Under the pieces are notes generated by a model. That model saw only the letters and a list, made by a program, of their open reading frames with translations, searched no databases and had not been told where the DNA came from. Shown here piece by piece: positions 32,253 to 43,100 of a DNA stretch of 64,000 bases; positions within the stretch are counted from its first letter, which is position 1; each line of letters begins with the position of its first letter. A program made the translations under genes and the position numbers. This DNA comes from Piromyces finnis finn (taxonomy: Eukaryota; Fungi; Neocallimastigomycota), in contig MCFH01000021.1 of the NCBI GenBank assembly GCA_002104945.1, positions 62,001 to 126,000 of the forward strand, written 5' to 3'.

Positions 32253-34918
32253 ATGGCCAAATCAAAAAAAAACACTAAACAAGAATTAAATGAAGAAGAA
32301 ATAGTTGATGAAATGGAATATGAAAATGATGAATATAATGAAGACGAATACAATGAAAATGAATTAGAAGGTGATGAAAATGAAGAAGAAGAAGAAGAAG
32401 AAGAAGAAAATGAATCTAAAAAACCACGTTTAGACAATCAACCACAAAAAAGTAACTTTTAGTTTTATTTTTAATAATTTATTACTTTTTTTCTTTTTTG
32501 TTAGAGTGTATAATTTTACAAAAGAATATATTAATATTATATATAAAGCAATTTATATAAATAATTATTTAAAATCTAAAAATCTAGAATATTTATATTT
32601 TTTTTATTTAAAAATATAATGAATTAATGAAAAAGAGAATATTAATATATTATTATTATTGTATTAATATAGACCAATTAACTCCAGAACAAAAGGCAGC
32701 AAATCGTCAAGCTCAAAAGCAATTAAAAAATGAAAGAAAAGCTCAAAATCCTTCATATGAAATTATTTATGAAGCCAAGGAAATTTGGGAAACTTTAAGA
32801 TTAAAGCGTAACACTAAAGATGAAAGAAAAGAACTTATGAATAAATTAATGAACATTATTCGCGGAAAAGTTCAAGAAGTAAATAATTATTAACAAAAAA
32901 AATAATTCTATAATAATTTACAATATTTTTATCTTAAATTTATAATCATTAATAATAATTAATTTTCTATGTAAAAATATTATTTATATACTTTAATACT
33001 AAAAAATATTAAAATGAATATGAAATTTTAAAGATTATTTTCAAGCATGATGCTTCACGTATTATTCAATGTGCAATTAAATATGGTAATCAATCACAAA
33101 GATCTGAAATTGCTAAAGAATTAAAAGGAAGATATGTTGAATTATCAAAATCCGTGTATGGTAGATTTATTATTAGTAGAGTTTTAGCTTACTGGTAAAT
33201 TAAATAAATACATAAATATGATTTATATTTAAAACATATTACTTAAAATCAATTTTAAAATGCAATTAATTCCTTTTATATAGTACTGATGAAAGAGCCT
33301 CAGTAATTGCAGAATTTTATGGTAAAGTTTTAAAGTTAATTAAACATAAGGAAGCCTCATTAATTATTGAAGAAGCATATTCTCAATATGCTAACGCTAC
33401 CCAAAGAACAGCATTAATTGAAGAATTTTATGGTCCAGAATTCGCTATCTTCAAGGTATAGAAAGATTCAATTTTTATAAGCAATTATAAATAATATATT
33501 GATTTTTTTTTATTTATTTAAATGAAAAATAATAATAGACTAAAGAAAATAGAAGTATTGAACAATTAATGGAACAACCAATTAAAAAAGAAAGTATTTT
33601 AAAGCATTTACAACATACTCTTTCATCAATTCTTGGTAAAGGTGGATGGGATATTACTGCTCACACTATTGTTCACCGCGCTTTAATGGAATATTTCCAA
33701 TATGCCGATGAACGTAACATTCAAAATATGATTGAATTTGTTAAAGATCATATTGTTCATATCCTTCACACTAGAGAAGGTGCCTATGTTGCTAGAAAAG
33801 CTATCTTATATGCTACCCCAAAAGAACGTAAATATATTATTAAAACTTTCAAATCTTATGTTGCTAAAATTGCATGTGAACAATATGGTCACACTGTTCT
33901 TTTAACCATTTTTGATTGTGTTGATGATACAACTTTAATTCAAAAATCAATTATTTCTGAAATAACTAAAAAGGTTAAGCCAACTACTACTATTGCTGGT
34001 ACCGAAGAAGATGCTGAAAATGTTGGTTTAATTAATATTATTACTGATCGTTGGGGTAGTCGTGTTGCCTTATATTTACTTTCTCATCGTAAAGGTAAAT
34101 ACTTCTCACCATCTGATATTAAACTTTTAGAAGAAGGTGATGCTATTCGTTCTAAAACTAGTAAGAAAGATCCTGAAGTTAGAAGAAAGGAATTATTAAA
34201 TGCTTTCTCTCCACAAATGATTGAAATTTGTACAAAATATGCTGAGCAATTAATGAAAGATCGTGTTTCCTCACATGTTGTATTTGAAACCCTTAAATGT
34301 GCCGAAGGTGAAAAAGATGAATTAATTGAAGCCATTGCTTCTGTTGTTCAAGGTACTATCGAAGAATATAAAGAAAATAATACTCAAAAAAAGGAAGAAG
34401 ATGAATACTTTAACGCCATTAAAAAATTAGCTGCTGAAAAGGCTGAAGCTAAATATGTCGAAACCGAAAATGAGCATCCATTAGTTAGTCGTACTTCTAA
34501 TCAACTTATTAAGAATATTATAATGTTAAGCCAAAGTGAAGATGAAGAAAACCAAAAAATTGGAAAGGCATTTACAAAGGCTTTCTATACTAATATTAAA
34601 GATAATTTAGTTTACTGGGTAAAATACTGTGCCAAGGATGCTGTCCATACTAGTGGTATTGCTTATGCCTTATTAGCATTATTAGAAAATGCTGATAAAT
34701 CTACTGTTAAAGAAATTAAATCTTCATTAAAGTCAATTATTTCTAAGCTTAAGATAAATAAAGAAAATAAGCAAAGTGAAAATGAAAATCAAAATAATAA
34801 GAAAAGAAAGAGAAATGGTGGAGGAAAAGCTCAAAAACCAAAGATAGATAAATCAAAATTAGATGGTGGTGAATATTTAACTGGTATCGAGAAGTTGGTC
34901 AAAACATTAAAAAACTAA
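32253..34918 (+). CDS. PUF6: Pumilio-like ribosome-biogenesis RNA-binding protein Puf6/PUM3 (CPL domain)
   Basis: Acidic N-terminus; KHDASRIIQCAIKYG, EEFYGPEF, HTREGAYVA...YATPKERKYIIKTFK, DCVDDT, KKDPEVRRKELL motifs. Confidence 0.92.
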
Positions 34919-38643: not shown

Positions 38644-38850
38644 TTATATATAATATATATTAAAAATAAATTATTGAAATATTAAACATATAATAAAATT
38701 AAAAAAAAAATATGGAAATTAAATTTTCCATATTTCAGAATAATGAATAATTTTTTAAAAAAAAATAAATATAAATATTTTTCAAATTATTAATAACCAA
38801 AATAAAACAATTAAATAAATTTTTACATTAATTTTTCTTATATATATAAT

Positions 38851-38988
38851 AGTTGTCGCATTTTCCCCAACGCTATTTTCATTTTTTGAAAATAGCGTAA
38901 AGTATGGAAAATTCAATTTCTATTGCATAATTCCCTTCAATAATAGTTCACTAAAAAGAACCGTATTGTACACTAAATTTTATGCGTA
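38851..38988 (-). ncRNA. Box H/ACA snoRNA (hairpin-H-hairpin-ACA); predicted guide for the SSU rRNA U equivalent to human 18S U1692
   Basis: Minus strand: hairpin 1 (GCATAA/TTATGC lower stem; CAATA/TATTG plus GTTC/GAAC upper stem), H box ATAGAA (38923-38918), hairpin 2 (ATTTTCC/GGAAAAT plus 12-bp ACGCTATTTTCA/TGAAAATAGCGT), ACA at 38856-38854 followed by 3 nt. Pocket strands GTGTA and AAGGG. Confidence 0.8.
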
Positions 38989-39132
38989 TTTTCTTTTTAT
39001 TTTATTTATTTAATATTTATATTTACAATTAATATTTTATTTATTAATTTATATATAAATATCTTTTCATTGTGAAAATTTAATTTTGACATTAGATTTA
39101 CATTTCTTATATATTTTAGTTAAGCACATATG

Positions 39133-40146: not shown

Positions 40147-43100
40147 ATGACGGAAGCTATATATGATTATACTTTTGAAAGTATAAATAAATGTAGAGAT
40201 TTTGTGAAATTTCTACAAAAACGACAACAAATTGAAATTGAATATTCAAAAGCTTTGGGTAAAATATTTTAATAATTTTACTGTAATTTAAAAAATGGTT
40301 TTTCATATATATAAAAATTATATTTGACCAGTTATATCCTAATCATAGGGATATGCACATAAAATAAAATTATTTATAATTAAGAATACTATAATTGGTT
40401 TTGATAAAATAATAAAAATAAAAATATTATTCATAAAAATATTATAAAAATTATATCATTTATATGAAATATGAAATGTATTTCATATTAATACATACTA
40501 TAAATTAGAAAAACAAAATAAAGTATAAAAAGAAATTTACATATTTATTTATTGTTATTCAAAATTAATGAATGTATTTAGAATATCAATCTTTATATTA
40601 CCTTAAATAACTCATAAATATAAATATACAATTTTGTTTAATAGTAAGGCTATGTCAAAGTGTTCAACAAAGATATGGTAATGGAGATGTAGAAGATAAT
40701 AAAACTGATACTCAAAAAATTTTAGAAAATAAGTAAATATATTTTTTAATAAACATTTTTATTTTTATTAAATATTCTATAATAATTAATGATATTATAA
40801 TATACTTTTTTTTAATTATAGTTCATTATGGAGAGGGTTTCAAAGTCTTGTAAAGATTACAGAACAAATTGCCCAAAGTCATGTAATAATAATGTTTATA
40901 ATAGCATTAACAAATCAAAAATATTATAGTTCAAAATATTCTAAATTTTTACTACAATTATAATATAGAAAAAATTTTCATTTTCACTGAAAATGTCAGT
41001 AACAGATCCATTTGTTGAAAATATTACAAGAATGGAAGCACAAAGACAATCAGAACTTATGGAAAGTGATGAGCAGACAAAAAAACTTCAGGAAGCATAC
41101 ACTGAACTCAAAAAAGCAAAACAAGCATATCAAGAAAATAATAATGCTCTAAATGATTTAATGAATTTTAAAGTAAAAGCAATATCAACAAATAATTTTA
41201 AGGAAAAAGATGAAGAAAAGGTTTAACTTGAGTATATATGGATATATAGAATAATTACTCTTTAATATTAATATTACATACTATTAAAATAATTATAAAC
41301 TAGTGGAAAGCCAAATATGATCAAGCAGTTGAAAAAACTAATTATTCAAATGAATGTGTAAAATATTGTGAAGAAGTGTGTAAAAACGCTCAAGAACACT
41401 ACTATCATTCATTACTTCCAGCCCTTCGGGAGGTTAAATTAACAATATAAAGATTTTTTTTTACTTCTTTATAAAAACGAACTAACTAAAGTTTAAATTG
41501 ATATATATTTTAATTTTTAATTTTTATTTATATTATTATCTATTAAATAATAATATATATTATAATTAGAATATTAGAGAGGAAGAAGAAGAAAGAAGTG
41601 CAACTGTAAAAAAGGCAATGCAAAAAGCAACATACTTAGAGCATTGTCATGTCCAAGATTATATAAATGAATTGAACAGTATGAGTACTAGATTAAATGA
41701 AATTGATATCGAAGATGATATTGAAAACTTTGTTGATAATTGTGTATAATTATAGAATATATAATCAACAATTTTCATTAATGAGATTTAATTTTAACTT
41801 CTAAAATTTATTTCTTACTTTTCTTTTTTTTTTAAACATTTTAAAGATATGTGATGATAAGGAAAAAGCATCAAATGTATCAGTTAGAAGTTTACTCGAT
41901 CCGCAAATGACAGGAAGAATGTTTGTTCAAAGAGGTTATTTTTCAATCATTTATTTTATATAGCCTATGATAAAATATTTTAATTACTAAAAAAAAAAAT
42001 AAATTTAAAATAAATTTATATATAAATTATTTATAAAAATTATACTATTAAAAAAAAGGTGATGAAACTGGACAATGGAAATCAAAGTATTTTGTATTAA
42101 TGAAAAAATTCAATAGATTATATTGTTTTGATAATGAAGATGTAAAAATATTTAATATTTATAAATATAATATAAATTTAAATTTAATATATAACTTACC
42201 CTTTACTATATTTACATATTAAAAATAAAAAAAAAGTCTGAAAAACAAAGAGATATTATTGATCTAAATTCATCATCGATTCATACATTAGATTATAGCT
42301 ATTTCTTAAAAAAAAATTGTTTTCAGATTATTACTACTTTTCCTAATCCATTAATTTTATCAAATCAAAATGAAAACCAGTTATTGAATACCGATATCTC
42401 AAAAAATAAAACACCATATCAAGTTCTTATTTATTATTTTACTTTAGATAATGTTAGTGAATTTAATGAATGGGTTTATCAACTGACAGATACTGCTCAT
42501 TGTTGTACAAGATGCCAAAATACTAAAAGCATGTTAAAGAAATATAGCATAAATTGTAATAATCAAATGTTTAATGAATTGGGTATGAATAATATAACAC
42601 AAACAACTGAAGAATCAGAATTTGGTCAAGTTTTAAATCTTAAAAATGCAAAGGAAAAAAAAAATAGTATATCAATTGAATCAGCTTTTTATCCTTCAAT
42701 GAAAGTTATGAAAACATTAAAAGAGAATTGTTCAGATGACGATAGTCAAAATCAAAATTTCTTAAATTGTAATCCGAATTTCCAATTCCAAATTCGTCGT
42801 AATCTCTGTGTTTCAATTTTAGAAGCAAGAGATTTAATAACTACAGACAAACGTAAAAATATTGAACCTTATGTTGTTGTTCTTCTAAATGATATTAAAA
42901 AGGCAAAAACTTCAGTGAAAACAGGATCAGAACCTTTCTGGAGAGAAGAATTTAAATTTAAGTAAATATTTATTTTCTAATTATATAAATTCTTCAATAA
43001 AATAAATAATAAATAATATGCATGTTTTATTTATTATGTATTATTTCATATAATATTCTATTAAATTAATTAGTAATATACCACTTTGTGCTAAAAGAAT

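Follow-up and report, generated by a model that had tools for sequence, protein, structure and literature searches.

What is the conserved, comparatively GC-rich block on the minus strand of an AT-rich spacer in Piromyces finnis, and which RNAs might it act on? The block lies within the window, the whole 64,000-nt stretch of contig MCFH01000021.1 that was analysed. The original prediction read it as a box H/ACA snoRNA that guides the 18S rRNA pseudouridine equivalent to human Psi1692. Comparative and structural analyses suggest that the block is an independently located box H/ACA snoRNA gene of about 139 nt. It is found in at least two genera of the Neocallimastigomycota, and it might guide the modification of two sites, 18S U1633 and 28S U2887. 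From the sequence comparisons described below, a probability of roughly 0.8 is assigned to this reading. The parts of the element are given here in window coordinates, from the 5' to the 3' end of the RNA.

38851..38989, minus strand: predicted H/ACA snoRNA, whole (hairpin 1, hinge, hairpin 2 and tail), marked by the GC island and by conservation
38980..38985, minus strand: lower stem 1, 5' strand GCAUAA; pairs with 38925-38930 (6 bp); invariant in 4/4 homologues and present in the Anaeromyces minimum-energy fold
38969..38973, minus strand: pocket 1, 5' guide strand GUGUA; pairs with 18S UACAC 1635-1639; invariant in 4/4
38938..38968, minus strand: hairpin 1 upper stem-loop, CAAUA/UAUUG and GUUC/GAAC with an 8-9 nt loop; recovered by RNAalifold, with wobble-compatible changes
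38933..38937, minus strand: pocket 1, 3' guide strand AAGGG (AAGGA in Anaeromyces); pairs with 18S CCCUU 1628-1632
38925..38930, minus strand: lower stem 1, 3' strand UUAUGC; partner of 38980-38985
38918..38923, minus strand: H box ATAGAA (ANANNA), in the hinge
38906..38912, minus strand: lower stem 2, 5' strand AUUUUCC; pairs with 38860-38866 (7 bp); one wobble-compatible change in Piromyces sp. E2
38899..38905, minus strand: pocket 2, 5' guide strand AUACUUU; pairs with 28S AAAGUGU 2889-2895; extendable into CC at 38906-38907; invariant in 4/4
38870..38898, minus strand: hairpin 2 upper stem-loop of 10-11 bp; one compensatory pair and one broken pair, both in Piromyces sp. E2
38867..38869, minus strand: pocket 2, 3' guide strand UGG; pairs with 28S CCA 2884-2886; invariant
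38860..38866, minus strand: lower stem 2, 3' strand GGAAAAU; partner of 38906-38912
38854..38856, minus strand: ACA box; invariant; 13 nt past upper stem 2 and followed by the 3-nt tail ACU at 38851-38853

The 139-nt element has a GC content of 29.5%, compared with 7% and 12% in the adjoining spacer and 19% in the whole window. Its 5' end was placed where conservation starts, and its 3' end three nucleotides after ACA. The succession of hairpin, H box ATAGAA, hairpin and ACA was found on the minus strand as originally described, with all of its coordinates correct. The H box, the ACA and the 14-nt spacing (38937-38924) from the pair that closes upper stem 1 to the H box also stood. The tail of exactly 3 nt is a choice of end point: the 3' end of the RNA is predicted from a sequence comparison of three species, in which ACA is invariant and conservation falls off directly past it.

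The two flanking genes encode a uridine kinase/UPRT and an F-BAR/PH/C2/RasGAP protein; these identities come from unspliced ORF fragments and from the Pfam annotation of the genes called at the syntenic positions in the relatives. Both genes are on the plus strand. The element is thus antisense to both, as had been proposed, and intronic in neither. The uridine kinase/UPRT fragments end at about 38643, some 210 nt before the snoRNA block, and the F-BAR/RasGAP gene starts at 40147, about 1.2 kb beyond it. A Puf6-like ORF is located at 33569-34915 of the window, and its product matches a Piromyces finnis protein at 100% identity. The order Puf6, uridine kinase/UPRT, snoRNA (minus strand) and F-BAR/RasGAP is common to Piromyces sp. 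E2 (locus L008) and Anaeromyces robustus (locus L009). BLAST identified one copy in the equivalent spacer of Piromyces sp. E2 (L008:19058-19199, minus strand) and two tandem copies in A. robustus, about 265 nt apart (L009:17984-18122 and L009:17719-17857, minus strand). In the P. finnis genome (56.46 Mb, 232 contigs), the sole BLAST match was the locus itself; by this search the gene appears to be single-copy. The homologue set therefore consists of four sequences from three species.

Further homologues were sought in other data. A metagenome pattern scan gave one match, which was GC-rich and unrelated, and a GTDB contig pattern scan gave zero matches. Two Puf6 protein searches for syntenic loci returned long contigs only from Piromyces sp. 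E2 and A. robustus; in an ENA rumen contig, Puf6 lies at the contig end and the downstream flank is absent. The uridine kinase/UPRT exons are too short to serve as anchors for locus searches.

Between species, identity is 81-89% within the snoRNA but 38-60% across 130-150 nt on each side. The only spacer blocks that can be aligned between the two genera are the snoRNA and the start of the F-BAR gene. Within the RNA, the two Anaeromyces copies share 96% identity with each other, compared with 77% and 57% in their flanks. The tandem duplication therefore appears not to be very recent, with both copies apparently under constraint. Upstream of the RNA, some similarity to the Anaeromyces and E2 loci continues for about 80 nt (38990-39066) and includes a TATATATA-like block. 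The distance of this block from the RNA varies from about 45 to 80 nt by species, and it may reflect chance in such AT-rich DNA rather than a promoter.

The variation among the four sequences follows the expected anatomy of a guide RNA. The H box reads ATAGAA, ATAAAA or ATATAA across the three species, so that the fourth position (N) alone differs. ACA is preceded by G, A or U and followed by three bases that differ among the homologues. By comparison, GUGUA, AAGG, AUACUUU and UGG are unchanged in 4/4 homologues. The variable positions are found in the apical loops, the distal part of pocket 1 and the hinge. The original prediction had looked to related genomes for conservation of boxes and guide strands and for covariation. 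The boxes and guide strands are conserved in two genera, apart from the change of AAGGG to AAGGA in Anaeromyces; the covariation among four sequences from three species falls short of significance, being matched or exceeded in 131 of 500 shuffles.

Among the 33 base pairs, 27 are invariant, four vary with pairing retained, and the remaining two are each disrupted in a single sequence. The four retained pairs comprise one compensatory change (U-A to C-G, in E2) and three one-sided changes to or from wobble; one-sided changes number four in all, three of them wobble-compatible. In upper stem 2 of E2, a C-G pair has changed on both sides to an A.A mismatch. In the canonical fold 98% of the cells are paired, compared with 37-54% when the partners are slid. 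Lower stem 1 was counted on a hand-placed alignment, in which a 2-nt gap misplaced by MAFFT at the Anaeromyces 5' end was corrected, and it was left out of the covariation and sliding test.

Folding analysis showed that the 138-nt RNA is 5.2 standard deviations better than dinucleotide shuffles (z = -5.2). Both Anaeromyces copies are predicted to adopt the canonical H/ACA fold at minimum energy, and the canonical upper stem 1 and the entire hairpin 2 are also present in the RNAalifold consensus. When the P. finnis and E2 sequences are folded singly, the minimum-energy prediction gives hairpin 1 another structure, rich in G-U pairs, in which AAGGG is buried. The Anaeromyces substitutions disrupt this alternative.

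These data bear on the simplest doubt, that hairpins and brief A-rich motifs arising by chance in an AT-rich spacer have been taken for a functional RNA. ANANNA and ACA are indeed very frequent in DNA of 19% GC, and the covariation is statistically weak. The decisive point against chance is the sharply bounded, conserved and GC-richer island in three species, which is syntenic in two genera; the fold z-score and the complementarity of both pockets to rRNA point the same way. A chance origin is hardly credible.

The strand of the element could be assigned from its base pairs. Several G-U pairs of the minus strand become A-C mismatches if read on the plus strand; the snoRNA strand is therefore minus. 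A covariance model of this family (R1) scored 162-166 bits on the minus strand, whereas on the plus strand its single match at E<=1 had 17 bits, over one Anaeromyces copy. The strand also bears on the suggestion that the block is a conserved cis element, either a plus-strand structure in the 3'-UTR of the UPRT mRNA or a block that serves the F-BAR/RasGAP gene as a promoter or in its regulation. Its position, some 210 nt past the UPRT stop codon and about 1.2 kb ahead of where the F-BAR gene starts, would suit such a role, and the plus strand also folds well (z = -4.6). However, the A-C mismatches and the R1 scores disfavour the plus strand, and the box arrangement is absent from it. In addition, the invariant sites are the A residues of the H box, the ACA and the pocket strands, while the loops vary, and both pockets are complementary to rRNA. 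A cis element is therefore considered very improbable. The reading as an H/ACA snoRNA proposed originally is in turn supported by the invariance of boxes and guides, the sharp limits of conservation, synteny and the strand-specific G-U pairs.

Targets were searched in the P. finnis rDNA unit, comprising the 18S (1804 nt), 5.8S and 28S (3540 nt) rRNAs. The 8.5-kb rDNA repeat of P. finnis also carries a 5S gene in its intergenic spacer, encoded on the other strand from 18S-5.8S-28S (L007:6914-7032, minus; G000:C153). The best rRNA match of pocket 1 is 18S CCCUU-UG-UACAC, with 5+5 Watson-Crick base pairs and U1633 unpaired. The sequence CCCUUUGUACAC is present exactly once in the rDNA unit, at 18S 1628-1639, which defines U1633 as the predicted target. 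This uridine ranks first among rRNA sites for both the Piromyces and the Anaeromyces pocket 1 guides. In the Anaeromyces guide, the fifth pair of the 3' arm is lost (G to A) and a U-A pair is gained in the 5' arm; the pairing becomes 4+6, again 10 Watson-Crick pairs, with an additional C now opposite 18S G1627.

By universal sequence, we take U1633 to be the U directly 5' of E. coli G1392, i.e. U1391. On this basis, U1633 of the P. finnis 18S rRNA, in helix 28, is the counterpart of E. coli U1391 and human Psi1692. In PMC10164566, human Psi1692 is equated with bacterial U1391 and placed in helix 28, where it forms a pair with G1206 and touches a structural K+ ion. The proposed equivalence of the predicted pocket 1 target to human Psi1692 is thus upheld, with the same nucleotide ranking first in two genera; the site lies in helix 28, the neck helix (PMC10164566), and not beside helix 44 as had been suggested. 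The guide named for the human site, U70/SNORA70, agrees with the snoRNABase assignment (PMC9610020). A different assignment is given in PMC7760958, with SNORA64 for 18S U1692 and SNORA70 for 28S U4975. This is the reverse of the snoRNABase assignment in PMC9610020, and the two names in PMC7760958 are probably swapped.

The pairing of pocket 1 is minimal in length (10 bp), and its significance depends on the score. About 1% of random guides reach a bipartite match of 10 Watson-Crick base pairs anywhere in the rRNAs. With a laxer score that tolerates G-U pairs, about 10% of AU-rich random guides equal pocket 1, and with G-U allowed about 10-38% of random guides attain 10 bp somewhere in rRNA. 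The runner-up is 18S U712 (CCUU-UA-UGCACU), with 4+6 pairs including one G-U; its score in P. finnis is 9.5, close to the 10 of U1633. When the Anaeromyces guide is used instead, U712 falls to 4+5 pairs and a score of 8.5, while U1633 stays at 10.

Pocket 2, to which the original prediction had assigned no target, was scanned against rRNA and snRNA as it had proposed, and a match was found at 28S U2887. All nucleotides of the pocket pair with 28S CCA-UG-AAAGUGU around this uridine, as 3+7 pairs including one G-U. The pairing is extendable to 3+9 if the top of the lower stem opens. Random guides match as well at a rate of 0.011-0.015; the 3' arm has 3 bp only. By its offset from the A loop, whose marker UUGUUCAC is at 28S 3063 in P. 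finnis, U2887 presumably corresponds to yeast 25S U2744, with Um2921 as the yeast reference position. The equivalent of yeast 25S Psi2735 was also considered as the pocket 2 target; it was set aside on the A-loop offset, which places the site 9 nt away, at the U2744 equivalent. This site is not known to carry a Psi in yeast or human.

It might be argued that the RNA is a true H/ACA RNA but that one or both rRNA matches are coincidental, so that its role would lie at U712, on another RNA, or in an orphan or chaperone-type function. The near-equal score of U712 in P. finnis, the ease with which random guides reach 10 bp once G-U pairs are allowed, and a pocket 2 site not known as a Psi in yeast or human all lend this some weight. 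On the other side, the Anaeromyces guide lowers U712 while U1633 keeps 10 Watson-Crick pairs. Each pocket independently has one clear best rRNA site, with U-G left unpaired at the right distance from its box, and the snRNAs U1, U2, U4, U5 and U6 provide no target. The equivalent of U1633 is moreover a documented Psi in another eukaryote (PMC10164566, PMC9610020). Coincidental targeting is judged unlikely, though less so than the other alternatives.

The family was then compared with known systems. The original prediction had proposed an Rfam scan as a check, and no Rfam family recognises the element. At gathering thresholds, a scan of the whole window with 4227 families returned nothing, and a permissive scan of 38750-39100 (E<=10) returned matches at chance level only (plasmodium_snoR31, E=1.8; a miRNA, E=6.1). 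The P. finnis RNA nevertheless shares with the box H/ACA snoRNAs (yeast snR, human SNORA) the layout of hairpin, hinge, hairpin and tail, with an ANANNA hinge and ACA near the 3' end. It also shares the size (about 139 nt), the two pockets, the bipartite rRNA complementarity, and the unpaired U-N at 14-15 nt before each box. It differs from the class in matching no Rfam family and in being extremely AU-rich, and from intronic H/ACA genes in its independent location, antisense to both neighbours.

The SNORA70 model (RF00156, gathering score 40 bits) gave no match in 38750-39100 at E<=10 and none genome-wide at E<=1. The P. finnis RNA thus differs from human U70/SNORA70 at the level of the family model, both at the locus and across the genome. 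We know of no 28S target listed for SNORA70 like that predicted for pocket 2. What the two RNAs share is the predicted target, the U just before G in CCCUUUGUACAC, in helix 28 (PMC9610020, PMC10164566). By family-model search, an orthologue of SNORA70 and a convergent guide cannot be told apart.

H/ACA RNAs act by an established mechanism, in which hairpins with internal pockets pair with a target RNA within an RNP and direct pseudouridylation. By analogy, the P. finnis RNA would be transcribed, fold as two hairpins that both contain an internal pocket for pseudouridylation, and assemble with Cbf5/dyskerin, Nop10, Nhp2 and Gar1; the P. finnis genome carries a gene of the dyskerin type (DKCLD). 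Pairing with the pre-rRNA would leave a single uridine free in each pocket, at the pocket top and 14-15 nt before the H or ACA box, and this uridine might be isomerised to pseudouridine. Pocket 1 would select 18S U1633 in helix 28 and pocket 2 would select 28S U2887. The RNA is very probably a genuine, previously uncatalogued H/ACA guide with two predicted rRNA targets. That both modifications are real, at the neck uridine of helix 28 and at 28S U2887, and are made by a guide of no detectable kinship to SNORA70, is a more tentative proposal, to which we give somewhat less than an even chance. If it were true, the RNA might be an ancient opisthokont guide that has diverged past recognition, or an independent re-invention.

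The snoRNAs of the Neocallimastigomycota are largely unannotated, and this locus adds a well-supported H/ACA gene with two target predictions. S. cerevisiae is not known to have a Psi at the position equivalent to human 18S Psi1692. If confirmed, the 18S modification would bear on the question of whether 'animal-type' rRNA modifications like this one go back to the ancestor of the fungi and disappeared in budding yeast; the 28S site would be a candidate lineage-specific pseudouridine. The predicted 18S site is the neck-helix uridine that is modified in humans, where the K+ contact occurs (PMC10164566). The phylum is absent from a survey of the fungal snoRNAome (PMC5824354), and the practical value of the locus is mainly in annotation and in the R1 model as a seed covariance model for the clade.

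Finally, a Cajal-body-type (scaRNA-like) H/ACA RNA, which would guide pseudouridylation of snRNAs, was considered. In the apical part of hairpin 2 (38876-38882), the 3' side of the loop reads UGAG in E2 and Anaeromyces, which resembles a CAB box; P. finnis, however, has UGAA there. The P. finnis U1, U2, U4, U5 and U6 snRNAs were scanned and gave no acceptable bipartite target comparable to the rRNA sites (best score 6.5). A scaRNA-like role is thus more improbable still than a cis element, and the rRNA-guiding H/ACA snoRNA remains the preferred reading. As for the snRNA genes themselves, the U2 snRNA of P. finnis is encoded by three identical genes arranged in tandem with a spacing of 923 bp (G000:C146:599794-601833).
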